DNA from: Lepidodermella squamata | Taxonomy: Eukaryota; Animalia; Gastrotricha | Length of the DNA stretch: 64,000 bases | Direction of reading: 5' to 3' | Assembly (NCBI GenBank): GCA_047495785.1 | Contig: JBLDXI010000009.1 | Location: 2,914,001 to 2,978,000, forward strand | Part shown: positions 5,656 to 52,241 of the stretch, one piece after another | Position numbering within the stretch: the stretch's first letter is position 1 | Layout of the letters: every line of letters begins with the position of its first letter | The notes under the pieces: generated by a model | Seen by the model: only the letters and a program-made list of their open reading frames with translations | What the model was told of the DNA's origin: nothing | The model's database searches: none | Made by a program: the position numbers and the translations under genes

Positions 5656-8040
5656 ATGCGTCTTATTAGTCTGGTCATTCTACTCGCCTGGTCGGCGATC
5701 TCTTCTTGCGCTGAGTTGAAAGTTATGCGTATGCTCGCCTTGATTCAGTTCACTGGAGCGGAACCTCGGGATGGAAGAATTTGCCAAGCAACAATGCAGG
5801 TTGCAGTCAATAGCGTGAATGCAAGGCGAGATTTGCTGCCGGACTATCGTGTTGAAATCGATTTCCAAAACGAAGAACCCGGTTCAAGAATGTCACCCCG
5901 GCGATTTATCGAGTTTACCAGGCAATTTGACAATGCCAATAGATCAATGTTACTCGCCCCAGTTTTTGTCGGACCGAACGGGAACTGCCAGAATGTGGCA
6001 AGAGCTGCTGTTAGTTATCGAATGGTTCAGTTCTCAACAGGCTGCGGCGGAGCCCAATTCACAGCTAACAGGAAACAATTCCCTAACCTTTACAGAAGCC
6101 GAATTCCGAACGAGCCGCGAATAATTCCTATACTTATCTTTATTCAAAGAATAGGGCTTTGGAAGCAGATCGGAATTTTGACCTTTGCTGGGAATCAAAA
6201 CGAATTCTTAGTCGGCAGGAATCTTCACACTGCTGCAACCCAAGCTGGAATCGAGGTTGTATGGTTTGGCACGATAATGGATATGGATGAAGATGTGGTA
6301 ACTTCTTTGAAGAAAAGTGATGCTCGAATCATTTTCGTTCAATTCAGTGATGCCCCTCGTTACATTCAATTCATGTGCCTAAGCTATCAAGGCGGAGTTA
6401 CTGGATCAAGATATCTATTCGTTATGCAAACTGTTGTCTTCATCAATCCTTACAGCAGTGACTATCAACTGCCAAAAGGTTGCAATCGTGAGATGGTTCT
6501 AGAGCAGATCAAAATCACATTTTGGATAGGAGTGTTTGATTTTGCCATTGGTGATACCGGGGCAACTTCCCTAAACTACACTCTCGATGAATTTGAGAAG
6601 AAAGTGGACTTGCTGACTAACTCGTCTCGTAGTGCTGACTATGACAGAAGGCATCGATGCCACGATACAATGACTCAAGCTCTAGTGACTCTGGATGTCG
6701 CTGATAAGAGGCTGAAAGCAGAGTTAAACTTGTCACTTCAAGATCACCAGCGATTCCCAGACTTGGTTATGCGGGTTGTGAATGAAACAGCATCGACAGC
6801 TAATGTCTCAGGTCTTAGGATAGGCCCCATTGAATACTCAGACAGGCTGGAAGTGGACAACGAGCCGCAATGGATATCTCAGTTCATTGAAGGAAAATGG
6901 CGCCATGTTTACAAAGTTTGGCATTTAGGAAATAACGGGAGTAACACTCTGGAACCTAAAGCATACGCCAGCCAGGGTTTCGCTGACCCAATCTGGATGA
7001 CCAAAGATGGAAAACCACCTAAAGATCTATCCGATGTAGCAATTTTCAAACAAGACGTCCCTATATTTGTAACTTGGCTAGTCGCCGGAATAATTTGCGT
7101 AGCCACGGTCTTCACCTTTCTTATGGCACTGCAAGTTGTTAGGATTGGATTGCGCCAGAAGAGTGGATTTGGGAATCTGCACAAGCTAAATAGCGTTTTG
7201 TTAATGGGACTTGTCCTTCTTTACGGATCCAGCCTCGCTTATTCGGTTAATCCATCTATAGCTGGAGAGTCGATTTGCACAATTCGTTTAGCTTTGGCGA
7301 TATTAGGGTTTGCCTCCGTAAATGGGAGTGTCTGTATTAGAATGTTAGCGGTGAAAGATTTCCTGGCGAGCTTAAATAGAAAGCCTCGAAAATTAAGACG
7401 AAAAAAGATTGCATCATTGCTATCGGCTGCCAATCTTGCGTCTAGATCGATTGAAAAGCCACCGGAGCGAACACCTAAAGCTATCCTGGCTGAAGGAGCG
7501 CATCGCGCATTCTGCATGACTTGCATCTTCATTTCAATTCATCTAGTAGCAGCCATTGTTTTTCTTGGGGTGGTTGATCGTCAGCTTTTGGTGTCTACAG
7601 TCTCACCTACAATTTATGACGCTTCGAGCGATATCAACTTTCGAATTCAAAATGTTTCCTGTCAATCATACTATCAAGATATTTGGATAGGAGCTATAGC
7701 AGCTATTAATTTTGTCTTGTTAGCTTTCGCAACATTCTCGTCTTTCGAAATCCGTAAATTGGTTCCCCCGCAGGAAATAAAGTCCGAGTTGCGGGCAACC
7801 AAATTTGCATCGATAAACCAGTTGACGTTGCTTGTTTTCTTCACTCTCCTTATTGTTATGTTGCCATCTGGAATTTACGAAATTCTTGCAATAATTATTG
7901 GATGCGCAGCTTTTGGCAGCACGACGGCTCTAATTTGTTGGCTTTCTACATTGGAAACGAAACCGTCGAACGAGAATGCTTCTCGCGCTGGATCCGCGGC
8001 TAATTTTGCTCTTCGCACGGAAATGAGTCATCAAGCGTGA
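5656..8040 (+). CDS. Class C GPCR, GABA-B-receptor-like (Venus flytrap + 7TM, no cysteine-rich domain), intronless
   Basis: 794-aa ORF: signal peptide, ANF-receptor/VFT motifs (AVNSVNARRDLLPDY, NRKQFPNLYR, LKKSDARIIFV), W..GKPPKD linker, seven hydrophobic helices. Confidence 0.85.
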   Translation: MRLISLVILLAWSAISSCAELKVMRMLALIQFTGAEPRDGRICQATMQVAVNSVNARRDLLPDYRVEIDFQNEEPGSRMSPRRFIEFTRQFDNANRSMLLAPVFVGPNGNCQNVARAAVSYRMVQFSTGCGGAQFTANRKQFPNLYRSRIPNEPRIIPILIFIQRIGLWKQIGILTFAGNQNEFLVGRNLHTAATQAGIEVVWFGTIMDMDEDVVTSLKKSDARIIFVQFSDAPRYIQFMCLSYQGGVTGSRYLFVMQTVVFINPYSSDYQLPKGCNREMVLEQIKITFWIGVFDFAIGDTGATSLNYTLDEFEKKVDLLTNSSRSADYDRRHRCHDTMTQALVTLDVADKRLKAELNLSLQDHQRFPDLVMRVVNETASTANVSGLRIGPIEYSDRLEVDNEPQWISQFIEGKWRHVYKVWHLGNNGSNTLEPKAYASQGFADPIWMTKDGKPPKDLSDVAIFKQDVPIFVTWLVAGIICVATVFTFLMALQVVRIGLRQKSGFGNLHKLNSVLLMGLVLLYGSSLAYSVNPSIAGESICTIRLALAILGFASVNGSVCIRMLAVKDFLASLNRKPRKLRRKKIASLLSAANLASRSIEKPPERTPKAILAEGAHRAFCMTCIFISIHLVAAIVFLGVVDRQLLVSTVSPTIYDASSDINFRIQNVSCQSYYQDIWIGAIAAINFVLLAFATFSSFEIRKLVPPQEIKSELRATKFASINQLTLLVFFTLLIVMLPSGIYEILAIIIGCAAFGSTTALICWLSTLETKPSNENASRAGSAANFALRTEMSHQA

Positions 8041-8421: not shown

Positions 8422-10674
8422 ATGAAGTTTTACCTTACTTCGCCCCTTTTCGCCGTTTTTGCCGTGGTCATTGAATCGCAGAATATGAAGCCATTCATTC
8501 TACGTCAACTCGCCCTGATTCAGTTTACAGGCGCCGAGCCTCGAGATGGTCGAATATGTCAAGCGGCAATGCAAGTTGCTGTTAACAGCGCAAACGCAAA
8601 TCCGAATTTCTTGCGTGACTATCACATCGAAGTAGACTACCAAAACGAGGGGGCGAATTCAGAAATGACCCCTCGCCGATTCATGGAATTTGCCACTCGA
8701 CAATCTTCGCCAGGATCCCCATCTCCCGTTGTAGTCGGTCCTTACGCGAACTGTCAAAATATCGCTAGAATCGTACAACGTCACAACATGATTCAATTTG
8801 CGACTGGGTGTGGCGGTCCACAGTTCACGGCGAATCGACTGAAATACCCAAATTTATACCGGAGTCGAATGCCCAACGAGCCTCGCCTCATCCCTATCTT
8901 GTTTTTCATTCGGCAAATTGGCTCCTGGAGGCAGGTTGGAATCCTAACATTTGCCGGCGACAAGAATGAATTTGCCGTCGCCAGCAACCTGCACGCATCA
9001 CTTAGCCAAGCTGGCATCGAAGTGGTTTGGTTCGGAGGCATCTTGGATATGGACAGCAATGTGATAAGTTCTTTGAAAGCTAGTGCTACTCGTGTTTTGC
9101 TCGTCCAGTTCAGTGATGTTAGCCGTTTTGTCCAATTCATGTGTCTCAGCCATCAAGGCGGAGTTCGTGGGCCCCGTTACGTTTTCGTGATGCAAACAGA
9201 GGTTTTTGTTGATCCGTACAGTAGCGAATACACTTTGCCAGCATTTTGCACCCGAGCTATGATCCTCGAGCAAATGAGAATAACTTTCTGGATCGGAGCT
9301 TTTGATTTTGCTGTCACTGACAACGGGCCAACTAGCCTTGTCTATGGTCTGCAAGAATTTGAGAAACGTCTTGATGATCTGACTAATAGATCTCGTAGTG
9401 CTGATTATGACCAGCGGCACCGATGCCACGATTCCATGGCTCAAGCCCTTGTAACACTAGATTTGGCCGAGAGAACCCTGAAATCGAGATTAAACATGAC
9501 GCTTAAAGACCACATTAACTATCCTGAGCTAGTGTTACAAGTCATAAATGCCAGTGCGGCCTCGTTGAATGTTTCTGGCCTAAGAATCGGGCGAATTCAG
9601 TATAACGATCGGCTCGAGGTCGACAATGAGAACCAATGGATTGCGCAATGGATCGACGGAAATTGGCGCTATATCTACAAAGTCTGGCATGTTATGAATA
9701 ATGGCAGAGCAACTTTCGACCAGATTTCTTCATACAGATACGAGATGTTGGCTGATCCTATTTGGAACACAGATGACGGCAAACCACCTGCTCATCTGTC
9801 ATACTTTAGCACGAGGAAGGCTGGTCTGTCCAATTTAGTTTTCTGGCTGGCGTTATCAACCGTTGTCGCCTCGTTTATTATCCTGATTTTCCTTGAAGTT
9901 AACTTCCGTTCTCATCAAGCTTCACGTTGCCTGTCCAGTCAGCTTTCGATCCTTGGCGGCGGTTGCCTACTCATTGGTTCATTCCTTTTCGCAATAGACG
10001 CAGAGACATTCCCGGTTGCAGTCTGCAGCTCGAGAATTCTCATCTCCGTCTTGGGCTTGAGTTTGATTAATGGATCGGTGTCATCTCAAATGGCTTTAAT
10101 CGCGCGCTATTTGCGGACCTCTCGAACCCAAACCGAGACGACCATTCAAAGCCGCTCACATCAAATTCCAATTTCTGATCACCATTCATCTGCAGCTCGG
10201 ATCTTAGCAGCAAATGACTTGAAACGAACGTCGAAGCTGTCAACGTTATTTGCAGTTATTTTCACTGCCATGAACCTGATCATTAGCGCCGTTACACTTT
10301 TCGGCGCGAGAAATCCACGCTTATTAACCTACGTATCATCCTTCGAGTTTGATGTGGAAAAGGAGGAGTATTACGTTGTTAGAACTGCGTCGTGTGCTAA
10401 TGAGTATTATCAGGTATGGATCGGCCTACTCGCTTGCCATTTGATCCTCCTCGCAACAGCCGGGTTTCTCGCCTACGAGATGCGGGATCAGCCAGCGGTA
10501 ATCAACGAGTTCTTGAGCACGCGCTTGAATGCAATTAACACGGTGACGTTATTAACATTGCTAGCTGTTCTGTTTTTCACCGTACCGTCTCGTGAATTGA
10601 GTAACCTGATCGTGTTAATTTTCGGAGGTCAGCTGTACGCTGTGATAACCGCCGTAATACTTTTTTTAGTATGA
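8422..10674 (+). CDS. Class C GPCR, GABA-B-like paralog 2, intronless
   Basis: 750-aa ORF; VFT closely similar to 5656-8040 (LALIQFTGAEPRDGRICQA shared), 7TM more diverged, almost no C-terminal tail. Confidence 0.85.
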   Translation: MKFYLTSPLFAVFAVVIESQNMKPFILRQLALIQFTGAEPRDGRICQAAMQVAVNSANANPNFLRDYHIEVDYQNEGANSEMTPRRFMEFATRQSSPGSPSPVVVGPYANCQNIARIVQRHNMIQFATGCGGPQFTANRLKYPNLYRSRMPNEPRLIPILFFIRQIGSWRQVGILTFAGDKNEFAVASNLHASLSQAGIEVVWFGGILDMDSNVISSLKASATRVLLVQFSDVSRFVQFMCLSHQGGVRGPRYVFVMQTEVFVDPYSSEYTLPAFCTRAMILEQMRITFWIGAFDFAVTDNGPTSLVYGLQEFEKRLDDLTNRSRSADYDQRHRCHDSMAQALVTLDLAERTLKSRLNMTLKDHINYPELVLQVINASAASLNVSGLRIGRIQYNDRLEVDNENQWIAQWIDGNWRYIYKVWHVMNNGRATFDQISSYRYEMLADPIWNTDDGKPPAHLSYFSTRKAGLSNLVFWLALSTVVASFIILIFLEVNFRSHQASRCLSSQLSILGGGCLLIGSFLFAIDAETFPVAVCSSRILISVLGLSLINGSVSSQMALIARYLRTSRTQTETTIQSRSHQIPISDHHSSAARILAANDLKRTSKLSTLFAVIFTAMNLIISAVTLFGARNPRLLTYVSSFEFDVEKEEYYVVRTASCANEYYQVWIGLLACHLILLATAGFLAYEMRDQPAVINEFLSTRLNAINTVTLLTLLAVLFFTVPSRELSNLIVLIFGGQLYAVITAVILFLV

Positions 10675-10943: not shown

Positions 10944-10978
10944 TTAATTTAAACACAATTTTGAGCGGGTAAGAGGCT

Positions 10979-11603
10979 TTGGCTAATCCGATCTGGATGA
11001 CCAAAGATGGAAAACCACCTAAAGATCTATCGGATGTAGAGGTATTCAAACGAAACATCCCAATATTTGTAACTTGGTTGGTTGCCGGAATAATCTAAGC
11101 TGCCATGACCGTGACCTTACTCATGGCACTGCAAGTTGTTAGGATTGGATTGCGTCAGAAGAGTGGATTTGGGAATCTACACAAACTTAATAGCGTTCTG
11201 TTAATTGTCCTTCTTTACGGATCAAGCCTTGCATATTCGATTAATCCTTTCATTGCTGGGGAATCGGTTTGCACAATTATTCGTTTAGCTTTGGCGATAT
11301 TGAGGTTTGCATCGGTTAATGGGAGCGTCTGTATTAGAATGTTAGCGGTGAAAGATTTCCTGGCAATCTTGATAAGGAAGCCTCGAGGATTAAGACGAAA
11401 AAAGATCTCAGCATTGTTATCGGCCTCCAATCTCCAATCAAAAGCCAACGGAGCGAACACATAAAGCTATCCTGGCTGAAGGAGCGCATCGCGCATTCTG
11501 CATGACTTGCATCTTCATTTCAATTCATCTAGTAGCAGCCATTGTTTTTCTTGGGGTGGTTGATCGTCAGCTTTTGGTGTCTACAGTCTCACCTACAATA
11601 TAT
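10979..11603 (+). pseudogene. GPCR1 pseudogene copy, left part (about 6980-7615 equivalent)
   Basis: High nucleotide similarity to GPCR1 with indels and a premature stop; 5' half absent; interrupted at 11603 by insertions. Confidence 0.85.
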
Positions 11604-11653
11604 TACAAGTTCCAGTGCGAACACTGTGATAAGAGCTTCGCCACTCGTGGCAG

Positions 11654-12306
11654 TGTCACACCTATCTATTAGAACAGAGTTATATCAAACCAGTAGCTTG
11701 ATCAACTCGAATAACAGATAGAGAATTAATTCTGGTATTTGATATTTTATTGCGACACTTGTTCGGTGACACAGGGCAGAAGTCTTCGGATGACTTCGTC
11801 GACAGTTAGTAGCACACGTAATTCTAGTGTCATAAACTAATCAAAGCTCGTGAGCTGTTAGCTTTGCTAGTTCTAGTGGTCTGCTAGTTAAGCTTGTTAG
11901 TTAGTTGATACAGAATGAGAAACATGGAGTTTATATAGGCTCATGCTACTGCGTCATTGGAATATTGCCAAGATCCATCATAGTACTTTCTATAGATGAT
12001 TCATATTTATTAAGTCGAAGCTATGATGAGTCATAATTATTATGACGTATCGATTGCATCATGGAGATGAGTCATTATTCCTATTGCGTATTGATTGCGC
12101 ATTATCTTTGAATCGATTGCTGATCGATTTCCTATTGCGTATTTCGAGATTGCTGATGCGTAGTTACGAATTATTGTTGCGTACGGAGGTGCGTCGTAAC
12201 TCATTTCTGATGTTCGAGCGTTGGTGGCTTGAAACCGGTAGCTGGTATTGAAAATATGAATAAACCTTTTGAAACGTATTGGTGTTGAGTGTTTAATCCG
12301 ATGACA
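11654..12306 (-). repeat. 3' LTR
   Basis: No differences from 21018-21670 seen by eye; minus-strand AATAAA at 11746-11751. Confidence 0.95.
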
Positions 12307-12321
12307 CCTCCCGCGTTACTT
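12307..12321 (-). promoter_or_regulatory. Polypurine-tract-like sequence
   Basis: AAGTAACGCGGGAGG immediately before the 3' LTR on the minus strand; purine-rich but imperfect. Confidence 0.6.
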
Positions 12322-12753
12322 TACATTTCGTCCCGAAATGATGGCGACTTTTCAAAACGCGTCGGTTGATTTTTGGCAAAAATTCCAGAATCCTGCGGCG
12401 AAAACTAAATTTTATTTGGTAAAACAATTTTTAAAATATTTTTAAAATATTATTTTAGCATCAATAATTATTTATTTAGCTAAAATATATTTTTCCTTCA
12501 CATTTCTCAGGAGTTTTCGAGAAAAAGTTGCAGGTTTAAGTTAGTAGGTGAACGTGATTTTTCAGCGGTTTTGGGTGGTTTTTCACTCTTCAAGACTTTG
12601 TCCACTCAGGTTTCTTTATTAAAACGACCGTTTTACTTAGTTCTTTAGGGCTTTTACTAACAATTTTCGTATTTTGTTTATCTAAATCGTTTCTAGGTTT
12701 TAATGGGTGACATAGGGAAGTTCACGCAGTGTTTATCTTTTACGCTCTTCTTT

Positions 12754-13350
12754 CTACCACTTCGGTTCTTGCTGTTGATATGTTTCGGGTGACCAGACTG
12801 ATACGCATCCGGCCTTTGGCGGGAATTCATGCTGGATCCGGACCACTGTGTCCAAATTTATGTTGAATTTGCCATCTGTTACGTGCATGTTGAACACATG
12901 GGCTGGCTGTGTTTGCACATAGTGATTGTCCCTTACGGGTCCTGCTACCTCCTTCTCTTGGCCTGTTGTTACTGCAGTCGTACTTGCGCTCAGATTCGGC
13001 ATAGTTTCGACCGCCAATTTTGGTACCAGGATCTTAGGTGAGCACCTCTGGGTCTCTTCCTGTGGTTGCTTGCTTAGACGATAGATCCCGTTGCTCGTGG
13101 CTGCTTCTCCAGCCAAAGTTCTTCGTAGCGCAATGGCTTCTTCTTCTTGCTGCTTTTCTTCTCGCGATATGTATTTCGATCTTAGGGGAATACTTTCGGC
13201 GTAGAGTTGATCATATGGAGCCGGTCTCTTTGTCCGGTCCATACGGACTCGTTCCTCCGGTGTGGCCTCTTGATATTCGCGAGCATAACGGTAACGCCGC
13301 GATTCCATCTTGGATGGCGACAGTTCTTTCTTGGAAACTTTGGCAGCCAT
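12754..13350 (-). CDS. Retrotransposon accessory ORF F (198 aa), unknown; charged N-terminus with KRPAPY NLS-like motif
   Basis: ATG-initiated, same strand as gag-pol, GC-richer than the AT-rich flanking spacers. Confidence 0.65.
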   Translation of the reverse strand: MAAKVSKKELSPSKMESRRYRYAREYQEATPEERVRMDRTKRPAPYDQLYAESIPLRSKYISREEKQQEEEAIALRRTLAGEAATSNGIYRLSKQPQEETQRCSPKILVPKLAVETMPNLSASTTAVTTGQEKEVAGPVRDNHYVQTQPAHVFNMHVTDGKFNINLDTVVRIQHEFPPKAGCVSVWSPETYQQQEPKW

Positions 13351-13582
13351 TGATAATAATTTTTCAAAATTCTAAGATTATAGATTATATTAAGTTTAAC
13401 AAGTTTTAAATTTTGCCTTTTCCTTTTATTGTTTCTAGGTTCTAGATTTGTAAAACAGTAAAGACTGAGCTTATGGTTTAATGAGTCGGCTTCTTGTGAT
13501 GATTTGTCGGTGCTAGTATGGCTGTCATGGTTGGTTATCTATGGTCGAACATTATGAAGTTCCTCTGTTGTGACGGGGCTGT

Positions 13583-13885
13583 TTATTCTTCCATCATGGG
13601 TGAACCATTTGTCAACGTCTCCTCTGACGTTGCAGGCGTTGTGGTTGGCGAGATAGTATCTAATACGAGTAGTATCAGTTCGAACGAGGTCTCGAGGAAA
13701 ATAAGGATTGTGGGTACAATCCTTGTCCCTATGGGGCTGACCGGCCGACCATCGAAACCGACCGGGTTGAAGTGGTCAATCCTCGTCAGAATTTCCCCGA
13801 ATGCAAAGTCGAGGTAAGCTCTGAGTTCGGGCACCGTCGTCGGTTGCCTGTACAGGGCCGTGGCGCGTTCTTGCAGATGAGCCAT
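13583..13885 (-). CDS. Retrotransposon accessory ORF E (100 aa), unknown
   Basis: ACAATGG start context, AT-rich spacers on both sides, hydrophobic/amphipathic segment IVPTILIFLETSFELILLVL. Confidence 0.55.
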   Translation of the reverse strand: MAHLQERATALYRQPTTVPELRAYLDFAFGEILTRIDHFNPVGFDGRPVSPIGTRIVPTILIFLETSFELILLVLDTISPTTTPATSEETLTNGSPMMEE

Positions 13886-14151
13886 TGTGAGTTTTGAAAA
13901 TTAATTTTATATTGAGGTAACAGAGTTCTAACAAGTTGAAGACATCAGTCATTAGGCCAGGCTTATTTATTTATTATGCCTTAGTTATTTTCTTGTCATG
14001 CCAGGGTATGCGTATAATATCCTTTTGGTAGTTGACTAGTATTATTTAACAAGGTATCAATGTAACAGACGCATGTTAGCAATTTGCTTTTTGTTTTCCA
14101 GGGATACAACTTTACTGATTGCCGTGGCTTTCGAGTCCTGGGTGAGCAGTT

Positions 14152-14580
14152 TTACGGGTCTGCAGGAGTCTGTCGCTGTGTCGGTGTGATGACGGCGAGC
14201 AATCGTGGCGGTCCGCGCTGGCTGGGTTGTCCGCTGGGCTCCGTGCCGAAGAGGTCGAAGCAGCATCGGGCGACTTCTTCCCCTCCGAACGTTTCCCTTA
14301 ATTGCGCGAGGACGGTCTGGTTTTGATACCATACTTGAAGGCAAGCGATGATTTCCGGGCCGAATTGTTTGATCACGTCTGGGCGATGCAGAGCTTCGAC
14401 CATTAAATGGAAGTTGGCCTGTTCTGCCAACGCCCGCCACCAGACCCAGACTTCGTCGGGCCGTCCTTCTTCCCAGCCGGGCTCCGGATACTGCTCGGGC
14501 AGGGACCGCTCCAGACTGGATGTAAATAGCCAGTCATTACACCACAGCCGAATGGGGTCGGTTATTGTATGGTCCACCGG
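14152..14580 (-). CDS. Retrotransposon accessory ORF D (about 142 aa), Trp/Cys-rich, no own 5' ATG
   Basis: Open frame starts right after TTTCTAG; in frame with the 50-aa ORF C (14581-14733), separated by one TAG. Confidence 0.55.
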   Translation of the reverse strand, partial: PVDHTITDPIRLWCNDWLFTSSLERSLPEQYPEPGWEEGRPDEVWVWWRALAEQANFHLMVEALHRPDVIKQFGPEIIACLQVWYQNQTVLAQLRETFGGEEVARCCFDLFGTEPSGQPSQRGPPRLLAVITPTQRQTPADP

Positions 14581-14733
14581 CTAGAAATTATACCGGCCCT
14601 GCTGGCGCTGCTTCTGGCGCCAGCGGCACCCGTCGATCGTAAAGAAAGTCAGTATCAATCGCAGCGCCCGTTGGTTTCGCTCGAGATCGCTGCTTGCGCG
14701 ATTGTCGTTTTGGTTGCCAGTGTTGACGTCCAT
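14581..14733 (-). CDS. Small accessory ORF C (50 aa, MDVNTGNQ...GRYNF), not in the supplied ORF track
   Basis: ACCATGG context, preceded by CTAAC...CTCAG branch/acceptor-like sequence. Confidence 0.4.
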   Translation of the reverse strand: MDVNTGNQNDNRASSDLERNQRALRLILTFFTIDGCRWRQKQRQQGRYNF

Positions 14734-14808
14734 GGTTGAGGTAATTCTTTATGCCTGAGCGTTAGTTTAACAATTAGTTGTTCGAATCTAGGATGCAATG
14801 TTAATTGG

Positions 14809-15030
14809 TTAATTAGTTATGCTTGGTGACAGTGTGTCCCATGGTACGCTGGGTGACAATGGCGCCGAATATTCTTCTAATTCGCCATCATCAGGCCAGT
14901 CGTCATGATCGAAGTTAGTCTGGTTGTCAAATAAGTCGAAGAGCGACGTGAACGAGAAGTCAAGAATTTCGGGTATACAGTTGTGGCGATATTGATGATT
15001 GGTGACAAGCGGTACCTCATGTGGCGCCAT
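14809..15030 (-). CDS. Retrotransposon accessory ORF B (73 aa), acidic/aromatic
   Basis: ATG-initiated; ILDFSFTSLFDLFD...DDWPDDGELEEY. Confidence 0.45.
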   Translation of the reverse strand: MAPHEVPLVTNHQYRHNCIPEILDFSFTSLFDLFDNQTNFDHDDWPDDGELEEYSAPLSPSVPWDTLSPSITN

Positions 15031-15102
15031 GAAGCTTTACTAGGTACGTTATTCAAGTTTAATTTGTAGAGCTAGGGCTCACTTGCTGCTTACGCGCTTA
15101 GG

Positions 15103-15615
15103 CTAAGGCGCGTTTCTGCAAATGCAAGCAAGTTCATCGATGAGGCGGTAGTAGACGCACTGGTCTATTTCCAAGTCGATTTCATAAATGTCGGAACATT
15201 GAACTATCAGCTCCTTATATAGCGCTACGCCGCATTTTTCAAACGTTTCGCAGCGTTGTTCCAGAACGGTCTTTTCGCAACGGCTTGTTACTATTTTTAT
15301 CGGCTCGTGCCCTGGTATGCCGGTGGTATTTTTGTCGGTTAACACCTCGGCACAGGGTGCGGCCGCGCCTGTTGCGTTGAGCGCGTCGGTATTATTATCT
15401 GCGTGTTCATTAGCGACTGCGCACGGAGCCACTTGCGTTTCATTTATTGATGTGCGCGCGGGCTCGGCAGCTATCATAGCGGCGATCGGTATTTCTTGTT
15501 TTAGCGCTTCCAACCCGCTTACAGTTTTATAAATCAGGAACGCGGTCGTCGTGACCATCGCGATGAGCGCTAGCGCCTGCAGCACGTTCTTTCCTAAAGC
15601 GATGTAGTTGCACAT
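15103..15615 (-). CDS. Retrotransposon accessory ORF A (170 aa), predicted type II membrane or secreted Cys-rich glycoprotein
   Basis: N-terminal hydrophobic helix, four N-x-T sequons (NET, NNT, NAT, NTT), C-terminal domain with 7 Cys ending in CIC. Confidence 0.7.
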   Translation of the reverse strand: MCNYIALGKNVLQALALIAMVTTTAFLIYKTVSGLEALKQEIPIAAMIAAEPARTSINETQVAPCAVANEHADNNTDALNATGAAAPCAEVLTDKNTTGIPGHEPIKIVTSRCEKTVLEQRCETFEKCGVALYKELIVQCSDIYEIDLEIDQCVYYRLIDELACICRNAP

Positions 15616-15807
15616 TGTCCAATCGTGTTGATGAATACGGTCTCTGTAATTTTATCCTTACGTAGTTTATGCGCTCCGGCCTTCGAGCTGTCAATTCCTT
15701 ATTCAATCAAAAAGAAAGGTTGCTCGTAAGCGCTCTGCCCGGGAAATTTTAAGACGTCTTGCTAGCGAGTTTTCTTTTTGTTTGAATATTTCTCCCTCCT
15801 TTTTCGG

Positions 15808-18800
15808 CTACTTGTCCGATTTCTGGTACATAGATTCGTTTATGCGCGGTTCTTTGTAACATTTTCCCAGTTTAGCCGCTCTTGCCGGTAACTCTCTGTG
15901 TATTATGTTGCTGCTTCCACTCGTTTTACACGTGATCCCTGTTTCTGCCGAGCTGGGTTCTGAGGCCGTTATGATGTTTTGTGGTGTGATGGTGGGCCCG
16001 GATGCTATTTCTGGCAGTGGTGGTGGCGTGATGTTGGGCAGGTTTCTGCTTGCTGCCTCACTGTATGTTATGTATTGCGTAGTCTGTATTGGCTCCATTC
16101 GCACTATCGGTTGGTGCGCTAACAGCCTCTGTAGCTCTTCGGCGCTGACTGTGCGCGCTTGATTTGACGTGTTATTGTTTGGCAGACTAGGCGCCGATGC
16201 CTCAGTGTTCCATTGTTCTATGTCATACTCGTCTGCGGGTAACAGTTGCAATGTGCGGCTTTTCTTTTGTAATGTGGTCTGCGTTGTGCTGCGTGAGTTG
16301 CGCTGTTGCTGTTGCGCTATCTCGAATTCGGTCATTTTATCTAGTTGAGCCGGGACATCGCCATAGTATTCTTTTAAGCGGTTGCGATGTACTACTTTTT
16401 CCTTACCGCTACCGTTAAACAGTCGTATTGCGTAGTTGAGCGCTCCGTAGCGCGCTACAACCGTGTACGGGCCGCGCCATGCGCAATGGAATTTCGCAGA
16501 CTGCCCTCTTTTTACCACTGGGTTATGCAGCCACACCAGCTCGCCTTCTTGGAAGGGCTCGCAGTTTTTGCTTCCTTGATCGTATGTACGCTTTTGGCGT
16601 GCGCGCGCCTGCGCTAGTTTTTGCCGCGTTTCTTTGAATGCGGTGCGTAAGCGTGTGTAGACTTTTTGTGCGTACTCACTACGGTTTTGGATTTCATGAC
16701 TGAATGCTGGCTCTTGAATGGCTACGTCTATCGGTAGCTTTGCATGCCGGCCAGTCATTAGATAGAATGGTGCGTAAGATGTTGAGTCGTGCGTGCTGGT
16801 GTTATACGCAAATAGCGCTGATTTAAGATAGACATCCCAATCGAATTGCGTAGCAGGAGTCAGATATTTAGCTATGATATCCTGTACTGTTTTGTTCATG
16901 CGCTCGCAAAACCCATTGCTCATAGCGTGGTATGGTGTGGTGTGTACGTGTTTAGTACCCAGGATTGCGCAGATATCGTTTATTAGCTTGGCCTCGAAGT
17001 TTCGACCATTGTCGTTTAACAAAATTTGGCTGCGCCCCCACCTAAAAACAAAGTCGAGCAGACAATCAGCCACTGATTCGGCTGTAATATTTTTAAGCGG
17101 ATATCCCTCAATATATTTTGTGAAGTGGTCGCCTATTAGCAGAATGTAATTGTTGCCTTTCTTTGTTGTAGGTTGGATTGGACCCATTACGTCCCATGCT
17201 ACGAGTGCCATTGGCTCCGTTGTGTCAATTGGTTGCAGGGGAGCGACCGGGTGCGCGTTTGGCGCTTTTCGTTGTTGGCAGTCATGGCATTTCCGGACGT
17301 AGTCAGCAATTGTTTCTTCCATCTTTGGCCAGTAAAATCGTTGTCGAACGCGATCCAGGGTACGATCGAGTCCCAAGTGTCCTGCATTCACATCGTTGTG
17401 CAAGCTTTTCAATACTCTGTCTTGTAATGCTGGCGGTATCCATGGACGGTTATCGTTGCCGAGTTTTACAATTACTCCTTTGGAATTATGTAAGAGTTTT
17501 GCCTTTTTCCATGAATCATCTTTTTGCTGAGCTTGCTTTATTTCTTCTAGGGCGACGATTACATCGGGGTCGCTTTGGAGACCTACGACGTTTATGGGTT
17601 CGGGTCGTCTTGACAAAGCGTCTGCGTTGGCGTGTTTGGCTCCAGGACGATAGATGAAGTCGAAGTCGTACTCTTGTAAAAACATCTGGTATCGTGACAG
17701 CTTTCCTCCGACATCGCGGCATCTGTTAATGGTGACCAGGGGATTGTGGTCCGTGATCAATTCGAACTTTCCTCCTTGGTGTCGCGTCGCTAAGTACGGT
17801 CGAAACGTCTTAATGGCCCACGTCGCACCAAGCAGCTCTCGCTCTGTTGTCGAGTATTTCTGCTCCGTCTTGTTAAGCGTGCGACTGGCATAGGCGATCA
17901 CCACTTCCTTACCGTCGTGTACCTGGCTTAGGACAGCGCCAACTGCGAAGTTGGAAGCGTCTGTGTAAACCCGAAAGGGTAAGTCGAACCTTGGATATGC
18001 TAATATAGGCGGACTTATCAACTTTTGCTTCAGAGTTTCAAAGGCTTCCTGCGCTTCGCTTGACCAACGAAAGTTTTGTTCTGACTTGCGTGTCAACGCG
18101 GTTAGTGGGGCCGCGATTTTTGCGAAATCAGGTACGTAGCGGCGGTAATACGAGGCTAGACCAAGGAATGCTCGGACCTCCGTAATGTCGCGTGGTGCTG
18201 GGTAGTCGCGGACTACTTTGACCTTCCCTTCGTCCGGTCTCACCCCTTGTGCAGTCACGATGTGGCCAAGGTATGGTACTTCTTGCTGTGCGAAATGACA
18301 TTTAGACGCTTTTATTTTCAGTCCTGCGCGTCTTAGTCGATCGAATACCCGTCGGATGCTGTCGAGATGTTCTTCGAATGTTCGGCTGAATATCAAGATG
18401 TCGTCCAAATATACCAAACATCGTTCGAAGAGTAGTCCGTTCAGGACGTATCCCATTAGTCTTTGAAACGTCGCCGGTGCGTTACTGATTCCGAATGGGA
18501 GTACGCAAAATTCGAACAAACCAAATGGACTTGAGAATGCCGTCTTTGGTTTTGATTCCTCCGTGAGTCCGACTTGCCAGTACCCGGATGCAAGGTCGAT
18601 GCCTGTGAACCAGGCTGCTCCCGACAGGGCGTCGAGTGTATCGTCGATCCGGGGCAGCGGGAATGCGTCTTTTTCCGTCATGGAATTTAATTTTCGAAAA
18701 TCGATGCAAAAGCGTACTGAACCATCCTTCTTGGGCACGAGTACGATCGGGCTGGCCCATCCGCTTGTGCTTGGTCGGACGACTCCGGCAGCTAGCATTT

Positions 18801-19848
18801 CGTCCAGTTCCTTTCGGATGATTTCGCGTTCTTTGAACGTCGTTCTTCGCGGTAGCTGCTTCACCGGTCTTCCCGTGGTCCGAATTTCGTGCTTTACTAC
18901 ATTGCATTTGCCGAGATCCCGCTTTCCTTTCGAGAAGATGTCGTTGTACTCGATTAGCAAGGCCTTCAACTGCTCCCTTTGTTTGTCTGTTAACTGTGGT
19001 GAGCTTAAGTCGAGACCCTCCGGCACAGTGGCTTGTTCTGCTTTCTTTTGCACTCCTGTTCCTACCGAATTGATGATCGGAGCTGTCTTGCTGGGGATTT
19101 CGGACTCGGCGACCTGTTCTAGGTAAGCTATCTTTTGATCTTTGTGTAGGACTAGCGGGCATTTTGACACGTTTAGGATGGGCACTACTATTTTCCCTTC
19201 CTTTGCGCGGACCAGTGCGTGACCTATTAGGTATGCGGGCTGTTCTCCTCCCAGCTCGATAGGGTTCGTAATGCCTACCCTACCGTCCGGTATGTCCGCG
19301 TGTCCTTCCACTAGCGCTGCCGTTTCCGGGGCTATTTGTGTGGCTTTTACTAGCCTTATGGGTTCTAGGGCTTCTGGTATGACCACTTGGTTAACTTGTA
19401 TGGTCTGGTTAAGTTCCTTCAGCGGTATTTTATTTCCGTCGAGGCTGATTTCTCTTTTAGACCAGTTGACCTTGGTGGTGCATTTTTCTAGGAAATCTGC
19501 GCCCAAGAGCCCTTCTGTGCATAAATTATTTACAAACAGAAAGTTGTGCTTGTAGGAATGGGGTCCCAGTTGAAACAGAATTTCTGCTTCTCCTGCCAGG
19601 TTGAGGGGCTTGCCGTCGGGGCCTACTGCCGTTGCCTTCTTTGTCAGAGTTCCCTTGGGTAGGTACTTAGACTTTAGACAACTTTTAGCGGCTCCCGTGT
19701 CGACTAGAACGTTTATTTTATTATTGTTTACTGTAAATTCTATGGCTAGTCCCTTAACACTGTTTTTACCCACTTGAGCTATTAATGCGGGGTTTGGCTT
19801 TTGGGACGGCGTTCCCCCGTTCGCTACACCGGCCCTTCCTAGTTTCCC
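15808..19848 (-). CDS. pol: Pol polyprotein (protease, RT, RNase H, integrase), reached by -1 frameshift from gag
   Basis: VDTGA protease, YLDD RT, TDAS RNase H, HHCC zinc-binding and D-D-E integrase (AWDVMGP, NDNGRNF, CERMN), GPY motif, then a long Q/T/P-rich tail; the frame is open from the GGGAAAC heptamer. Confidence 0.95.
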   Translation of the reverse strand, partial: GKLGRAGVANGGTPSQKPNPALIAQVGKNSVKGLAIEFTVNNNKINVLVDTGAAKSCLKSKYLPKGTLTKKATAVGPDGKPLNLAGEAEILFQLGPHSYKHNFLFVNNLCTEGLLGADFLEKCTTKVNWSKREISLDGNKIPLKELNQTIQVNQVVIPEALEPIRLVKATQIAPETAALVEGHADIPDGRVGITNPIELGGEQPAYLIGHALVRAKEGKIVVPILNVSKCPLVLHKDQKIAYLEQVAESEIPSKTAPIINSVGTGVQKKAEQATVPEGLDLSSPQLTDKQREQLKALLIEYNDIFSKGKRDLGKCNVVKHEIRTTGRPVKQLPRRTTFKEREIIRKELDEMLAAGVVRPSTSGWASPIVLVPKKDGSVRFCIDFRKLNSMTEKDAFPLPRIDDTLDALSGAAWFTGIDLASGYWQVGLTEESKPKTAFSSPFGLFEFCVLPFGISNAPATFQRLMGYVLNGLLFERCLVYLDDILIFSRTFEEHLDSIRRVFDRLRRAGLKIKASKCHFAQQEVPYLGHIVTAQGVRPDEGKVKVVRDYPAPRDITEVRAFLGLASYYRRYVPDFAKIAAPLTALTRKSEQNFRWSSEAQEAFETLKQKLISPPILAYPRFDLPFRVYTDASNFAVGAVLSQVHDGKEVVIAYASRTLNKTEQKYSTTERELLGATWAIKTFRPYLATRHQGGKFELITDHNPLVTINRCRDVGGKLSRYQMFLQEYDFDFIYRPGAKHANADALSRRPEPINVVGLQSDPDVIVALEEIKQAQQKDDSWKKAKLLHNSKGVIVKLGNDNRPWIPPALQDRVLKSLHNDVNAGHLGLDRTLDRVRQRFYWPKMEETIADYVRKCHDCQQRKAPNAHPVAPLQPIDTTEPMALVAWDVMGPIQPTTKKGNNYILLIGDHFTKYIEGYPLKNITAESVADCLLDFVFRWGRSQILLNDNGRNFEAKLINDICAILGTKHVHTTPYHAMSNGFCERMNKTVQDIIAKYLTPATQFDWDVYLKSALFAYNTSTHDSTSYAPFYLMTGRHAKLPIDVAIQEPAFSHEIQNRSEYAQKVYTRLRTAFKETRQKLAQARARQKRTYDQGSKNCEPFQEGELVWLHNPVVKRGQSAKFHCAWRGPYTVVARYGALNYAIRLFNGSGKEKVVHRNRLKEYYGDVPAQLDKMTEFEIAQQQQRNSRSTTQTTLQKKSRTLQLLPADEYDIEQWNTEASAPSLPNNNTSNQARTVSAEELQRLLAHQPIVRMEPIQTTQYITYSEAASRNLPNITPPPLPEIASGPTITPQNIITASEPSSAETGITCKTSGSSNIIHRELPARAAKLGKCYKEPRINESMYQKSDK
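19788..19848 (-). promoter_or_regulatory. -1 programmed ribosomal frameshift signal (slippery site + predicted H-type pseudoknot)
   Basis: G GGA AAC (19848-19842) just before the gag TAG; 6-nt spacer; stem GGGCCGGTGT/ACGCCGTCCC; loop CGGGG can pair with downstream CCCCG. Confidence 0.8.
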
Positions 19849-20825
19849 CAGTCCTGCTCGGCGGGTTTATTGAGCTCGGATTCACTTTTTGTTGGGCGAC
19901 GACAGTTTCGTTTGATGTGGCCCTCCTTTCCGCAGTTATAGCATTTAACGGGTCGTCTTCTCTGGTTATTGAACCGTCCCGGTCCGTTGCTATTGCCACG
20001 GAAAGAGTTATTGTTGCGCCGAAATGGTCGATCCTCCGGCTCCCCAACTCTTTGCTTTTCCATCTTATCTGCTAGTTGGTCTAACTTTTCGTCCTTTTTC
20101 TTTTGCAGCTCTATTTGCTGTGTCAACAGACCGATTAACAATGGTGTCGTGGAGTCTGTGATATTGCCGATAACTGGTGAAGTGCCGATGGCGCCAAGTT
20201 TAAGCGCTCGTTCTTCTCGCTCGGCCAATTCAACGGCTTTTTCGAGCGTAGCTGGGTCGCCGCTTGCCTTGAAGACGGCGATTCGAAGGTCTGGTCGTAG
20301 ACCTGCCATGAAGCGAGCAAGCAGTTTTGCGTCTTGGATGGCTTTTGTTGCCTCCGGGTCGGCTAACTTCATCAGCTTCCTGAGAGCTGCGAGGAAATCT
20401 CGGACTGTCTCGCTGGGTTGCTGAGTTTTGTTTTGAAATCGAACCTCAGCGACAGCTTTGTCGACTTCCAAATGGGCTCCTTTGGCCAGTATTTCTTTTG
20501 CCGCCTTTAAGCTGTAGACCGAATCGCGGTTTTCGGCTTCCCAAATTTCGAGCAGTTTAGCCGGCAGATATGCAGGCAAGACTTTCAAAACCATGCGAAT
20601 TTTGTCCCTTGCTGCTGTTTGGGCTGTAGCTGCTGCTGTTCGTGTTGTTTCGTCTGGTATCGCTGTGGCTGATACGTCGCGAGTTGCTGCGGTGTCGTCT
20701 ACTCCGCATGCTATGGCAATAGCGCTGAAATGCTGCCAGCTTTCCTCGAATTCTTCTGGTGATTCGCTCGAGATTTTCGGCAAAGCGTGAAGACATCTTT
20801 GTAATTCTAGAGTGGTGTGTGCCAT
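19839..20825 (-). CDS. gag: Gag (capsid + CCHC nucleocapsid)
   Basis: 328 aa; QQPSETVRDF major-homology-like region, RFMAGLRPDLR, zinc knuckle CYNCGKEGHIKRNC. Confidence 0.92.
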   Translation of the reverse strand: MAHTTLELQRCLHALPKISSESPEEFEESWQHFSAIAIACGVDDTAATRDVSATAIPDETTRTAAATAQTAARDKIRMVLKVLPAYLPAKLLEIWEAENRDSVYSLKAAKEILAKGAHLEVDKAVAEVRFQNKTQQPSETVRDFLAALRKLMKLADPEATKAIQDAKLLARFMAGLRPDLRIAVFKASGDPATLEKAVELAEREERALKLGAIGTSPVIGNITDSTTPLLIGLLTQQIELQKKKDEKLDQLADKMEKQRVGEPEDRPFRRNNNSFRGNSNGPGRFNNQRRRPVKCYNCGKEGHIKRNCRRPTKSESELNKPAEQDWGN

Positions 20826-20999
20826 CGATTACCATGTGCTGGTTACTTGTTTGTAGCGAATATTGTAGTAAAGAATCAATGCTTGTTTGACTCGTTGAGT
20901 TGCCTTTTTGAACCTGAGGTTCTTTTTCCGATTTGGGCGATAAATGTCAATTCTAGCGTGTTGCGCCGTAATTGTTTTGTGATTGGGGTGGTTTCGCTA

Positions 21000-21012
21000 A
21001 CCGCTGCCACCA
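21000..21012 (-). promoter_or_regulatory. Primer binding site, tRNA-Leu-like
   Basis: TGGTGGCAGCGGT, 5 nt inside the 5' LTR; complementary to the ACCGCTGCCA-CCA 3' end typical of eukaryotic tRNA-Leu(AAG/TAG). Confidence 0.8.
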
Positions 21013-21017
21013 GAATA

Positions 21018-21670
21018 TGTCACACCTATCTATTAGAACAGAGTTATATCAAACCAGTAGCTTGATCAACTCGAATAACAGATAGAGAATTAATTCTGGT
21101 ATTTGATATTTTATTGCGACACTTGTTCGGTGACACAGGGCAGAAGTCTTCGGATGACTTCGTCGACAGTTAGTAGCACACGTAATTCTAGTGTCATAAA
21201 CTAATCAAAGCTCGTGAGCTGTTAGCTTTGCTAGTTCTAGTGGTCTGCTAGTTAAGCTTGTTAGTTAGTTGATACAGAATGAGAAACATGGAGTTTATAT
21301 AGGCTCATGCTACTGCGTCATTGGAATATTGCCAAGATCCATCATAGTACTTTCTATAGATGATTCATATTTATTAAGTCGAAGCTATGATGAGTCATAA
21401 TTATTATGACGTATCGATTGCATCATGGAGATGAGTCATTATTCCTATTGCGTATTGATTGCGCATTATCTTTGAATCGATTGCTGATCGATTTCCTATT
21501 GCGTATTTCGAGATTGCTGATGCGTAGTTACGAATTATTGTTGCGTACGGAGGTGCGTCGTAACTCATTTCTGATGTTCGAGCGTTGGTGGCTTGAAACC
21601 GGTAGCTGGTATTGAAAATATGAATAAACCTTTTGAAACGTATTGGTGTTGAGTGTTTAATCCGATGACA
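21018..21670 (-). repeat. 5' LTR (promoter)
   Basis: TATATAAA at 21301-21294 on the minus strand; two ATGAGTCAT AP-1-type sites in U3. Confidence 0.95.
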
Positions 21671-22248
21671 GCAGGTTCGACATTCACATGGGTGAACGGC
21701 ATAATGGCGTAACGACGACGTCCAGTAGTGGTGAACGGGGAACCGCCGCTGAGAGGGCCAGCGGTGGGGCTGCGAAGGTGGTGCGCAGTCGTGGAGTTAG
21801 TGCCGCCAAAAAAATTGTAGTAAAAAATGTAAAAAATAAGGCGGGTACTAATAAGGTAGCCGGAGTGGGGAAAAATGGGCGATCGTCCAGTGAGCCTTTG
21901 TCGACCGCAATCAGTATCCCTACAAGCAGTCAGTCGTTGCAACGAACTGAACCCCCGGGAAGCTATGAAGGCCCGGTGACTCGGTCGAGGCGCTTGTTAG
22001 TACAGGTGCCAGAGCTGGGTCCTGGTCTGAGTAGTGGAACGGACATCACGCACGGGCACCTTTCAACGCAGGCGATTATCGAGCAACCTTCGGGACGCTC
22101 TCTCAGGTCGACTGCAGGTGTCAGTGCAAACAGGAAAGCAGCAGTTTTGATGGGCACTCGGCACCCATCGAGGCTGGACGGTGATTAGTATCATTGATTG
22201 GTGGACAACTGGCTCCGTTGGCTGGTTTCAGCTAGATGCTACCACCCA

Positions 22249-22685
22249 CACCTACAATATATGACGCTTCGAGCGATATCAACTTTCGAATTAAAAATGT
22301 TTCCTGTCAATCATACTATCAAGATATTTGGATAGGAGCTATAGCAGCTATTAATTTTGTCTTGTTAGCTTTCGCAACATTCTCGTCTTACGAAATCCGC
22401 AAAATAGTTCCTCCGCTAGAAATAAGCTCCGAGTTGCGGGCAACTAAATTTGCATCGATAAATCAGTTGACGTTGCTTGTTTTCTTCACCCTCCTTATTG
22501 TTATGTTGCCATCTGGAATTTACGAAATTCTGGCAATAATTATTGGATGCGCGGCTTACGGCAGCTCGACGGCTTCAATTTGCTGGCATTCAACATTGGA
22601 AACGACGCCTTCAAACGAGATTGCTCCCCTCGCTGGGACAGCGACTAATTTTGCTCTTCGCACGGAAGTGAGTCATCAAGCGTAA
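22249..22685 (+). pseudogene. GPCR1 pseudogene copy, right part
   Basis: PTIYDASSDINF...SHQA, nearly identical to the GPCR1 C-terminus; downstream intergenic DNA also matches 8041-8420. Confidence 0.85.
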
Positions 22686-23086
22686 TGTCTTGTGTTTTAC
22701 GAAGTAAAAAATTGCTATTTGAAACCTAGATTGCGTGTTGCTATACACCTGAATGCCATGGATTAGGAAAAAAGACGAATTATGAACGGTTATCACCGCA
22801 AAAGAAATTGGCCGTAAAAATCCTGACAAGGTCCTGAATGAAAAGGCTTGGAAATCTCAGCCTATTATGAGGTTAAAACCGAGTGGTGCTCATGGAGAAA
22901 GAACAGAAAATCAATAAAGAGTCTTTAGTCATAGTTAAAGAAATATAAGGACTGCGTCTATTAACCTCCAATTAGTGATTGGGGGCGACTGTGCTATCTG
23001 TAATGAACTAATTACGCATTCAGTTCGGCTTAGGTGGTCGAATATAAAGCCTGAGATTGAACGAGATTACAAGGAATATTCTCAAA

Positions 23087-23225
23087 ATGAATTACACCTT
23101 GCTTTGCCTGTTGTAGCCGTTTTTACGCCCATCTTGCTTTTCATGCAACAAATCGGCTTCTGGAACCAGGTTGCAGGTCGCAATCCTAACATTTGCCGGC
23201 AACCAGAACGAATGTACTGTAGCAA
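23087..23225 (+). pseudogene. Degenerate 5' remnant of a GPCR2 copy
   Basis: Matches 8422-8460, then jumps to about 8890-8985 (internal deletion, indels). Confidence 0.7.
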
Positions 23226-23860: not shown

Positions 23861-24269
23861 TCATTATTTTGAGAAAAATTGATTAAAAACTCCGTGGGCA
23901 AATTTGAACCAAAATATCACGTGTCGTCGGGACTTCGAGGTGTAGTATATCGCTGAGCTTCGCTCATGACGTCTACCGACGACTTCTGGACAATCAAAAT
24001 GAAAGGTTTTTCATTGCAACACAGGAGCCGCCGCATGTAGAGACTACTAGAAACTAGAATTATGTGGCATCTGGTGTATAGCGAATATCTGGCTGGCTGA
24101 AAAAATCTAAAAGGTGGTTTGATTGAATGAGTTTACAAGTCCATTAGCCTAAATTATTCGGGCGCTTGAGACAATGCTCAGTCGGAATTTAGAGCGGGCG
24201 GCGAACGTAGTGCGTTATCCCATTCAGAAGATTTTTGTGTTTACTCATATCAAAGACAGATTTCATGAA

Positions 24270-50896: not shown

Positions 50897-52241
50897 ATGC
50901 CCACTTACTTCGCAGTCGCCCTGTTTGGGCTAACCATTGTCCATTTTTCCGTGGCCGCCTCTCTGTTTGACGGATGCATCTCAAGCAAAGATTGCCCAGT
51001 CAACGCAGAGTGTCGCATCCTGTCTCCGAGTTGCAGCAAAGGAACTTGCGTTTGCATCCCCGGTTTCGTTGAACAGCTCAATAGCGCTACCAATACCTAC
51101 ACATGCAAACGAAGTAATATCCCTTGAGGCATTTCAACATTCATTTTTAATCAAATTTTTAGGCGTAATGTATGGCGGAAGTTGTAAATCCAGTTCTGAC
51201 GTTTGCGTCACAGCAAACTCAGACTGCATCGGCGGCACTTGTAAATGCCTTGATGCTTACAAAATCGGGCCAGGCGACAATAAGTACACATGCACAATTG
51301 GCACCCAGCCTATCGGTGGATCTTGCAAAACTGCTCAAGAATGCTACGATTTTGGCAATATGCAATGCAAAAAAGGCACCTGCGATTGCGCGGATGGTTA
51401 CACTGCCTATGACAAATATCGATGCGCGAGAAGTAGGACATTCACATATTGAACCATCCACTCTTTTATTCCACTTACCCTCGTAGGAAATGTTGGTGAT
51501 AAATGTGGTAATGATCGCGATTGCTGGGCTATGCCTAATACCTGGTGCAATAATGGTGTTTGTGACTGTAAACCTGGATCGCAGAAGAAGAAGGTCACTC
51601 TGCCCCAGCCGGTGGTTTACTTCAACCCGGCGTATGACAACGTTGCCACGGGTTACGCCTGTTTCGCGGGTACTAACCCTGGTGGGGAGGGCGATACATG
51701 CTTTTCGGGAGATGACTATCTAGTCGTTTCTGACCTGTTCCCTGCAACAACCCCGGCTCCCACTACTACTACTATTAAGACCACCACCACGACAACAACT
51801 ACTACTACCACTACTCCACCACCGGACGTACCCGTGGCGGATTCTCCGTCCGCAGGAGACGCTCCTGCAGCTGCTCCGGAAGTTTTCATGGAGGAAGGTG
51901 AGCCCACTGCGGAGCCGGCACCGGCCCCAGCTGAAGAAACTACAACGACGACGACAACAACCACGACAAAACCGACTACTACAACCACCACTCTGCCCCC
52001 AGTTACTACCCTGGCGCCTCTTAAGGTGCAGCCAATCACCCTTTGCGCGGCACCCTTCCAGTGTACCTATTGCACGGTGGATAAACCAATCTGTGCCCGT
52101 AAGTTGGGTTGAATTAATGTCTTTTATAGATCTGGTATCCTGTTTTTTCTAGGTATGAACCCAGTTTACGTGCAGGGCGCGAGCAGTTTAGGATTCAACA
52201 TCTTCGCTATCGTTGTTTCGTCAATTTTTGTTATGCTTTAA
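50897..52241 (+). CDS. Cys-rich EB-module repeat protein 1 with Thr/Pro mucin insert, GPI-like C-terminus
   Basis: Signal peptide, repeated GxxCxxxxxC...CxxGxCxC modules, poly-Thr tracts, hydrophobic tail. Confidence 0.75.

Follow-up and report, generated by a model that had tools for sequence, protein, structure and literature searches.

Introduction

What is encoded in the 3.5 kb that lie between the pol gene and the 3' long terminal repeat (LTR) of a young Ty3/Gypsy retrotransposon when this region is filled by a row of small open reading frames (ORFs)? The question is raised by an element of 10,017 bp at positions 11654-21670, minus strand, in a 64,000-nucleotide stretch of DNA from Lepidodermella squamata (contig JBLDXI010000009.1, positions 2,914,001 to 2,978,000; this entire stretch is called the window below). 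Between its pol stop and its 3' LTR there are six ORFs of 170, 73, 50, 141, 100 and 198 amino acids (aa), all on the gag-pol strand and named ORF-A to ORF-F in the order in which they follow pol (Table 1). The original prediction saw in them an accessory module of five to six genes, similar in layout to that of complex retroviruses. We found that ORF-A, ORF-D, ORF-E and ORF-F are coding sequence now or have been so very recently. In our view there is roughly an even chance that the 3.5 kb represent the element's own additional-ORF region, which comprises at least these four coding units, is expressed via subgenomic and probably spliced RNAs, and is neither junk nor a recent capture from the host. 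As a maintained accessory module, the region is plausible but unproven.

An intact and very recent Ty3/Gypsy insertion

The element is an intact and very recent insertion, in agreement with the original prediction. Its two LTRs (653 bp each, TG..CA ends) show 0 mismatches, i.e. 100% identity, and both gag and pol are uninterrupted. The Pfam domains of pol follow the order RVP (12-101), RVT_1 (346-506), RT_RNaseH (570-702) and Integrase_H2C2 plus rve (779-992), while a dUTPase match was not obtained in pol with Pfam. Among solved structures, pol is closest to the Ty3 Gag-Pol polyprotein (E 4.5e-115). Its frame is -1 with respect to gag, and the two frames overlap over a short distance. Together, the LTRs with their target-site duplication, the order of the pol domains and the features of gag identify the element as a member of the Ty3/Gypsy (Metaviridae-type) group. 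Because the LTRs are identical, the present state of the ORF frames was inherited from the parent copy and was not acquired since insertion. Moreover, decay after insertion is excluded by the intact state and the very young age of the element.

The small ORFs were found where they had been predicted, between the pol stop and the 3' LTR on the gag-pol strand, the whole element being oriented on the minus strand. The AT-rich spacers that had been proposed to separate them are also real. The GC content forms islands of 0.46-0.65 and drops to 0.13-0.35 between them, and the edges of these islands match the edges of the ORFs, most sharply at ORF-F. ORFs A, B, C, D and F are in the frame of pol and ORF-E is in another frame. 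Along the stretch from A to D, the frame shared with pol contains 11 stops compared with 26-27 in each of the other two frames. As a post-hoc observation, ATGGC is the start shared by gag, B, E and F, and C likewise has a G at +4. Sizeable tandem arrays are absent from the post-pol region, and an imperfect inverted repeat of 31 nt after the pol stop does not fold better than shuffled sequences (z -1.28).

Coding signatures of the small open reading frames

Two properties, the length of the open frames and their codon structure, were evaluated. In Markov shuffles of the 3.5 kb, the probability that the longest ATG-initiated ORF reaches at least 198 aa was only ~0.001-0.002, and ORFs of at least 50 aa added up to 823 aa in the real sequence versus ~224-231 aa in the shuffles. 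This excess is confined to the sense strand, the antisense strand being without any. The sense strand of the region is, however, A-rich and T-poor, which results in fewer stops. Given this T-poor strand, the probability of each open frame was recomputed from the base composition of the respective ORF itself. On this scale, A (~1e-3) and F (~3e-4) are still improbable as products of chance, D (0.03) and E (0.05) are marginal, and B (0.1) and C (0.46) fail to reach significance.

The codon structure was scored with a log-likelihood model that had been trained on separate counts for gag and pol, and stop-free Markov simulations of each ORF served as the null. The resulting z scores are 4.4 for A, 4.35 for D and 3.5 each for E and F, compared to 2.1 for B and 1.35 for C. 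Controls within the same region behaved as non-coding: an ORF of 127 aa that overlaps D in another frame scored z -1.5 and thus has no coding signal, and the codon signal of antisense ORFs is about zero. In a sliding map, the signal starts and ends at the ORF bounds and is nil in the spacers. Furthermore, the ORFs agree with gag-pol in their GC1>GC2<GC3 pattern, and in their codon usage A, D, E and F side with the element (+0.06 to +0.16 bits per codon), whereas eight nearby host ORFs gave -0.11 to -0.21 on the same score. A recent host capture is disfavoured because the codon usage of the four units resembles gag-pol and not these host ORFs. The presence of an early ATG was also considered as a sign of genuine starts, but this measure was dropped since early ATGs are equally frequent in antisense control frames.

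Hence, by codon statistics four of the six ORFs are supported, while one is marginal and one is unsupported. ORF-B is doubtful as a gene and ORF-C is probably not a gene. The earlier count of five to six accessory ORFs is therefore only partly confirmed: A, D, E and F carry coding signatures, whereas B and C are unsupported as genes, and D does not have an ATG start of its own. More generally, composition-trained codon statistics can sort real from spurious small ORFs within a single copy of an element.

Homology and fold searches

In the sequence and fold searches made, none of the ORFs matched an accessory protein, an env or a host gene. Retroviral regulators of the Tat, Rev, Tax and Bel1 types, the Env of insect Gypsy elements and the ORF3 types of rotifers were likewise absent among the matches. 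In Pfam (E<=1), no family was found for B to F, and no env or viral glycoprotein family was matched by any post-pol ORF, so that the element can be called env-less, as proposed before, in the sense that Pfam detects no env family. A Pfam match of ORF-A to TAP42 (E 0.11) is at chance level and was discarded. Sequence searches of the ORFs against the PDB returned nothing under E 0.09, an Rfam scan returned nothing, and for A and F there are zero relatives among 5.8 billion protein clusters. The ORFs are also not similar to each other, to gag, to pol or to the rest of the 64-kb window.

ORF-D gave slightly more. A full HMMER search against 1.84 billion representatives resulted in three weak matches (E 3e-6 to 2.5e-5), the scores of which add up contributions from 3-9 repeated stretches of repetitive targets. 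Residues 47-113 of D (14239-14439) align to the connector between reverse transcriptase (RT) and RNase H of an unrelated tandem Gypsy pol, with 32% over 76 residues. This resemblance was rejected as evidence and is kept as a lead only; the Pfam model misses D, and the element's own pol aligns with D at the corresponding site at chance level and without significance.

How much weight such negative results deserve can be judged from a control search with gag, which found one database relative, a truncated sequence of 56% identity on a 3-kb contig. Because even gag finds just one relative, the family must be nearly unrepresented in databases. Therefore, the absence of relatives of A, D and F is weak evidence on their conservation, either way.

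Properties of the predicted products

A hydrophobic helix at the N-terminus, which would be a signal or an anchor, four N-X-S/T sites and 10 Cys residues characterise the product of ORF-A; a furin-type site (R-x-K/R-R), a fusion-peptide pattern and a C-terminal hydrophobic span were searched for and are absent. The product of ORF-E shows a single membrane-span-like hydrophobic segment at residues ~55-80. In ORF-F, the coding signal is weak over the charged N-terminal third and strong over the C-terminal half, and the ORF carries a short basic cluster. Some features that would go with the surface glycoprotein, the acidic activator-like peptide and the protein with a nuclear localization signal of the original prediction can thus be seen (the hydrophobic segment and N-X-S/T sites of A, the acidity of B and the basic cluster of F), but the functions assigned to them rest on composition only.

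A proposed additional-ORF region owned by the element and its alternatives

If the 3.5 kb are indeed additional-ORF sequence that belongs to the element, A, D, E and F would be lineage-specific genes or exons that acquired their T-poor and A-rich codon usage during a long residence in a retroelement, and the non-coding, AT-rich spacers would bound the coding units. Expression may proceed from LTR-driven subgenomic RNAs, which would probably be spliced, comparable to env-bearing Gypsy elements, retroviruses and Cer1. This would make ORF-D, with its missing ATG, an internal or 3' exon, and some of the other units may likewise be exons of one or two genes. Judged by composition, A could be a small, N-glycosylated and Cys-rich protein that is signal-anchored or secreted, and E a single-pass membrane protein; A and E together might take over a membrane-targeting or egress role in place of a classical env. 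F is predicted to be basic and partly disordered, and could bind or regulate the element's RNA.

Several observations weigh against this reading. The first ATG of ORF-D is located 59 codons into the frame, the listed start is a GTG, and there is no ATG in the first 58 codons. Because of this, D is not a free-standing eukaryotic gene, and it is more likely that it is joined to an upstream exon. Structural models do not lend much support either: the single-sequence model of A is weak (predicted local distance difference test, pLDDT, 46) and confident solely at the N-terminal helix, and the model of D, a helical bundle, is also weak (pLDDT 56, predicted template modelling score 0.48) and found no match in PDB or BFVD with Foldseek. 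Eight sense-strand AATAAA motifs occur in the region, seven within spacers or at the end of an ORF, and transcripts could be truncated at these motifs; the enrichment of the motif is borderline. The weakness of B and of C also has to be counted here. Finally, no further copy of the element exists in the 64-kb window beyond the two LTRs, and large protein sets contain no relatives of A, D and F, so that the ORFs are only putatively conserved.

The same observations have to be compared with other explanations. The ORFs could be the surviving open pieces of one longer, env-like third gene that decayed before this copy was made and left an element that is now env-less. We regard this as unlikely, although A to E span ~2 kb, which is env-sized, A combines an N-terminal hydrophobic segment with glycosylation sites, E has its membrane-span-like segment, and small ORF3s of rotifers were interpreted as env remnants (PMC5408684). 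The fact that A, B, C, D and F are in pol's frame also fits such a relic, as does the stop deficit between A and D (11 vs 26-27). However, the coding signal ends at the ORF bounds with none in the spacers, and the sharp change in composition to a spacer GC of 0.13-0.35 is not produced by decay through point mutations. There is also no env family in Pfam, and A is without a furin-type site or fusion-peptide pattern. Moreover, the identical LTRs place any decay before this copy, yet four of the pieces hold codon structure at full strength.

A passenger origin appears to be slightly less probable still. In this case, pieces of foreign transcripts from the host, a mobile element or a virus would have been gained by template switching during reverse transcription and would not serve the element. 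The mosaic composition, with islands of differing GC (0.46-0.65) linked by AT-rich filler, and the orphan status of the ORFs would agree with this origin, and transduction-like additional ORFs are known from LTR elements, where they are usually restricted to one or a few copies (PMC7264820). It is opposed by the codon usage, which fits gag-pol and not the eight neighbouring host ORFs. Furthermore, no paralogue of the ORFs exists in the rest of the 64 kb, Pfam recognises neither a host-type nor a foreign domain in them, and every unit is in sense orientation. Least of all, we expect the ORFs to be chance products of a T-poor, stop-poor untranslated region, which we consider very improbable. Such an explanation can refer to the A-rich, T-poor sense strand that lowers the stop frequency, to B and C, which are within expectation, to D and E, which are marginal as open frames, and to the 158-codon frame that overlaps D and is open yet non-coding. 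But A and F are improbable even on their own composition, A, D, E and F beat the stop-free nulls by z 3.5-4.4, and the excess of ORFs is limited to one strand.

Other features of the element and its genomic surroundings

Table 1. Features of the Ty3/Gypsy element in the window (positions counted from the first nucleotide of the window).
Feature	Position	Strand	Remarks
5' LTR	21018-21670	-	653 bp, identical to 11654-12306
3' LTR	11654-12306	-	TATAAA at 11935, AATAAA at 11751, two ATGAGTCAT sites
Target-site duplication, low-coordinate copy	11650-11653	.	GCAG on + strand
Target-site duplication, high-coordinate copy	21671-21674	.	same 4 bases as 11650-11653
Candidate primer-binding site	20995-21012	-	TGG start, 5 nt past the 5' LTR
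gag	19839-20825	-	328 aa, Retrotrans_gag and CCHC knuckle (zf-CCHC), 0 breaks
pol	15808-19773	-	1321 aa as listed, 0 breaks; open frame extends to ~19866
Stretch from pol stop to ORF-A	15616-15807	-	non-coding, imperfect 31-nt inverted repeat
ORF-A	15103-15615	-	170 aa, acidic
ORF-B	14809-15030	-	73 aa, acidic (isoelectric point 4.1), marginal coding signal
ORF-C	14581-14733	-	50 aa, basic, coding unsupported
ORF-D, open frame	14152-14577	-	141 codons, GC-rich, acidic, predicted helical
D-E spacer	13886-14151	-	AT-rich, GC 0.29-0.44
ORF-E	13583-13885	-	100 aa, acidic
E-F spacer	13351-13582	-	AT-rich, GC 0.19-0.44
ORF-F	12754-13350	-	198 aa, basic (isoelectric point 9.0)
Tail after ORF-F	12337-12753	-	AT-rich, GC down to 0.13, short AT tandem repeat, no coding signal
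Candidate polypurine tract	12307-12336	-	22/30 purines, GGGAGG end abuts the 3' LTR, putative role

Some features of the LTRs, gag and pol are worth mentioning. In the U3 part of each LTR (12026-12075 and 21390-21439), two exact ATGAGTCAT sites, a palindrome of the AP-1/GCN4 type, are found in a unit of 33 nt that is repeated three times upstream of TATAAA. The whole window contains 5 such sites vs 0.5 expected. The repeat bearing these sites is likely an enhancer module of the element. A tRNA scan of the window found none, so there was no tRNA to match the candidate primer-binding site. At its C-terminal end, pol continues for 185 aa past the integrase C-terminal domain (15811-16365, minus strand); this tail contains many Ser, Thr, Pro and Gln residues, has neither a domain match nor a chromodomain, and yet shows a pol-like codon structure. 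A frame of 92 aa (20557-20835, minus strand) overlaps gag in a different frame, with its ATG 10 bases 5' of the gag ATG. CpG depletion was tried as a clock for the time of residence and was uninformative, with observed/expected ratios of ~1 or higher in most stretches. The ratio ranged from 0.93 to 1.59 in the stretches tested, for host and element alike, and because it is mostly ~1 or above, no methylation-driven loss of CpG is indicated in the host.

Class-C receptor genes without introns (ANF_receptor and 7tm_3 domains) form a tandem array at 5656-8040, 8422-10674 and 24174-26659, the third copy being divided into two adjoining ORFs. The flanks of the element at 10974-11606 and 22249-23124 match these neighbouring receptor genes. 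The matching sequence ends 47 bp before the element (11607-11653) and restarts 578 bp after it (21671-22248), and the two matches share 17 bases (7604-7620 of the paralogue), so that the element is not placed directly in host gene sequence. This arrangement suggests that a receptor pseudogene had earlier received an insert of ~0.6 kb, with a long target duplication, and that the Gypsy element landed later within this insert. At 485-3159 (minus strand), an ORF for a NACHT/NB-ARC ATPase is followed by an ankyrin-repeat ORF with an overlap of 4 bases, which is either an NLR-like gene in two frames or one with a small error. Additional host ORFs at 50937-51452, 53883-54479, 29703-30859, 54948-55799 and 61427-62212 encode EB modules, histidine phosphatase (two ORFs), leucine-rich repeats and a two-pore potassium channel. 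These ORFs, together with the receptors, point to an invertebrate animal genome.

Comparison with known systems

The assumption behind the original prediction, that the position after pol in Gypsy elements is usually empty or taken by one env, is outdated (PMC5408684; PMC10309623; PMC11963269; PMC7264820). Extra ORFs in this position are already known from LTR elements of rotifers, nematodes and plants and are not rare, and ORFs between pol and the 3' LTR, by which elements with additional ORFs are defined (PMC7264820), are present here. A close resemblance exists to the LTR retrotransposons Vesta, Juno and TelKA of bdelloid rotifers, which carry diverse ORF3s (PMC5408684). Among these are small ORFs (~210-230 aa) with hydrophobic segments and Cys residues but no detectable env homology, while many others could be traced to a paramyxovirus F-like protein, a GDSL esterase or a DEDDy exonuclease (PMC5408684). 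Like our element, they are invertebrate elements of the Ty3/Gypsy type with near-identical LTRs and lineage-specific ORFs after pol (PMC5408684). In contrast to the rotifer elements with one ORF3 each, there are at least four units here and none of them is traceable; Pfam (E<=1) matched no GDSL esterase, DEDDy exonuclease or paramyxovirus F-like protein in any post-pol ORF.

Plant elements such as Retand, Grande and RIRE2 also have conserved additional ORFs, and the region between pol and the 3' LTR of Retand measures 2.9-6.6 kb (PMC11963269; PMC7264820). The long region, the ORFs of unknown function and the recently active copies with identical LTRs are shared with our case. However, the plant ORFs are mostly antisense, contain a conserved domain (TRP28) and are often accompanied by tandem-repeat arrays, whereas those studied here are in sense orientation and domain-less, lack a sizeable array and belong to an animal-type host genome.

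For 'complex' gene content in a Ty3/Gypsy element outside the Retroviridae, Cer1 of C. elegans provides the precedent: its CERV is a regulator and not an env, is made from a spliced mRNA of five exons and has no homologues outside the host group (PMC10309623). The CERV exons overlap gag, whereas the units described here follow pol; this comparison is based on the description of CERV, which is absent among our search matches. To our knowledge, CERV is so far the sole well-studied case of an animal retrotransposon accessory function other than env.

The env-bearing Gypsy elements of insects (errantiviruses) and the complex retroviruses have extra coding capacity on the same strand after pol, as is the case here. 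As with their post-pol genes, expression from subgenomic spliced RNA is expected. Unlike errantiviruses, our element has no frame of env size (the longest has 198 aa) and no env family match. Unlike complex retroviruses, it has a pol that is nearest to Ty3 rather than to retroviral polymerases, no env, and no match to an accessory protein in Pfam, PDB or a viral structure library. Hence, the element is neither an env-bearing Gypsy element nor a complex retrovirus. Going further, it might represent an invertebrate Ty3/Gypsy lineage with a 'complex' genome of its own, in which at least four element-specific post-pol proteins (a glycoprotein and a membrane protein, both small, an acidic helical protein and a basic one of the RNA-binding type) would be made via alternatively spliced subgenomic RNAs, a non-retroviral parallel built from unrelated genes; we put this forward as an unlikely, speculative scenario. 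If the cassette is not conserved, the element is an ordinary young LTR retrotransposon with a long, ORF-bearing 3' region. If it is conserved and expressed, four orphan protein families would be added to the few known accessory functions of retrotransposons, and gene-rich, regulated Ty3/Gypsy genomes would have arisen more than once with unrelated proteins. Compared to all these systems, what makes the element unusual is the number of separate coding units on the sense strand, all of which are orphans.

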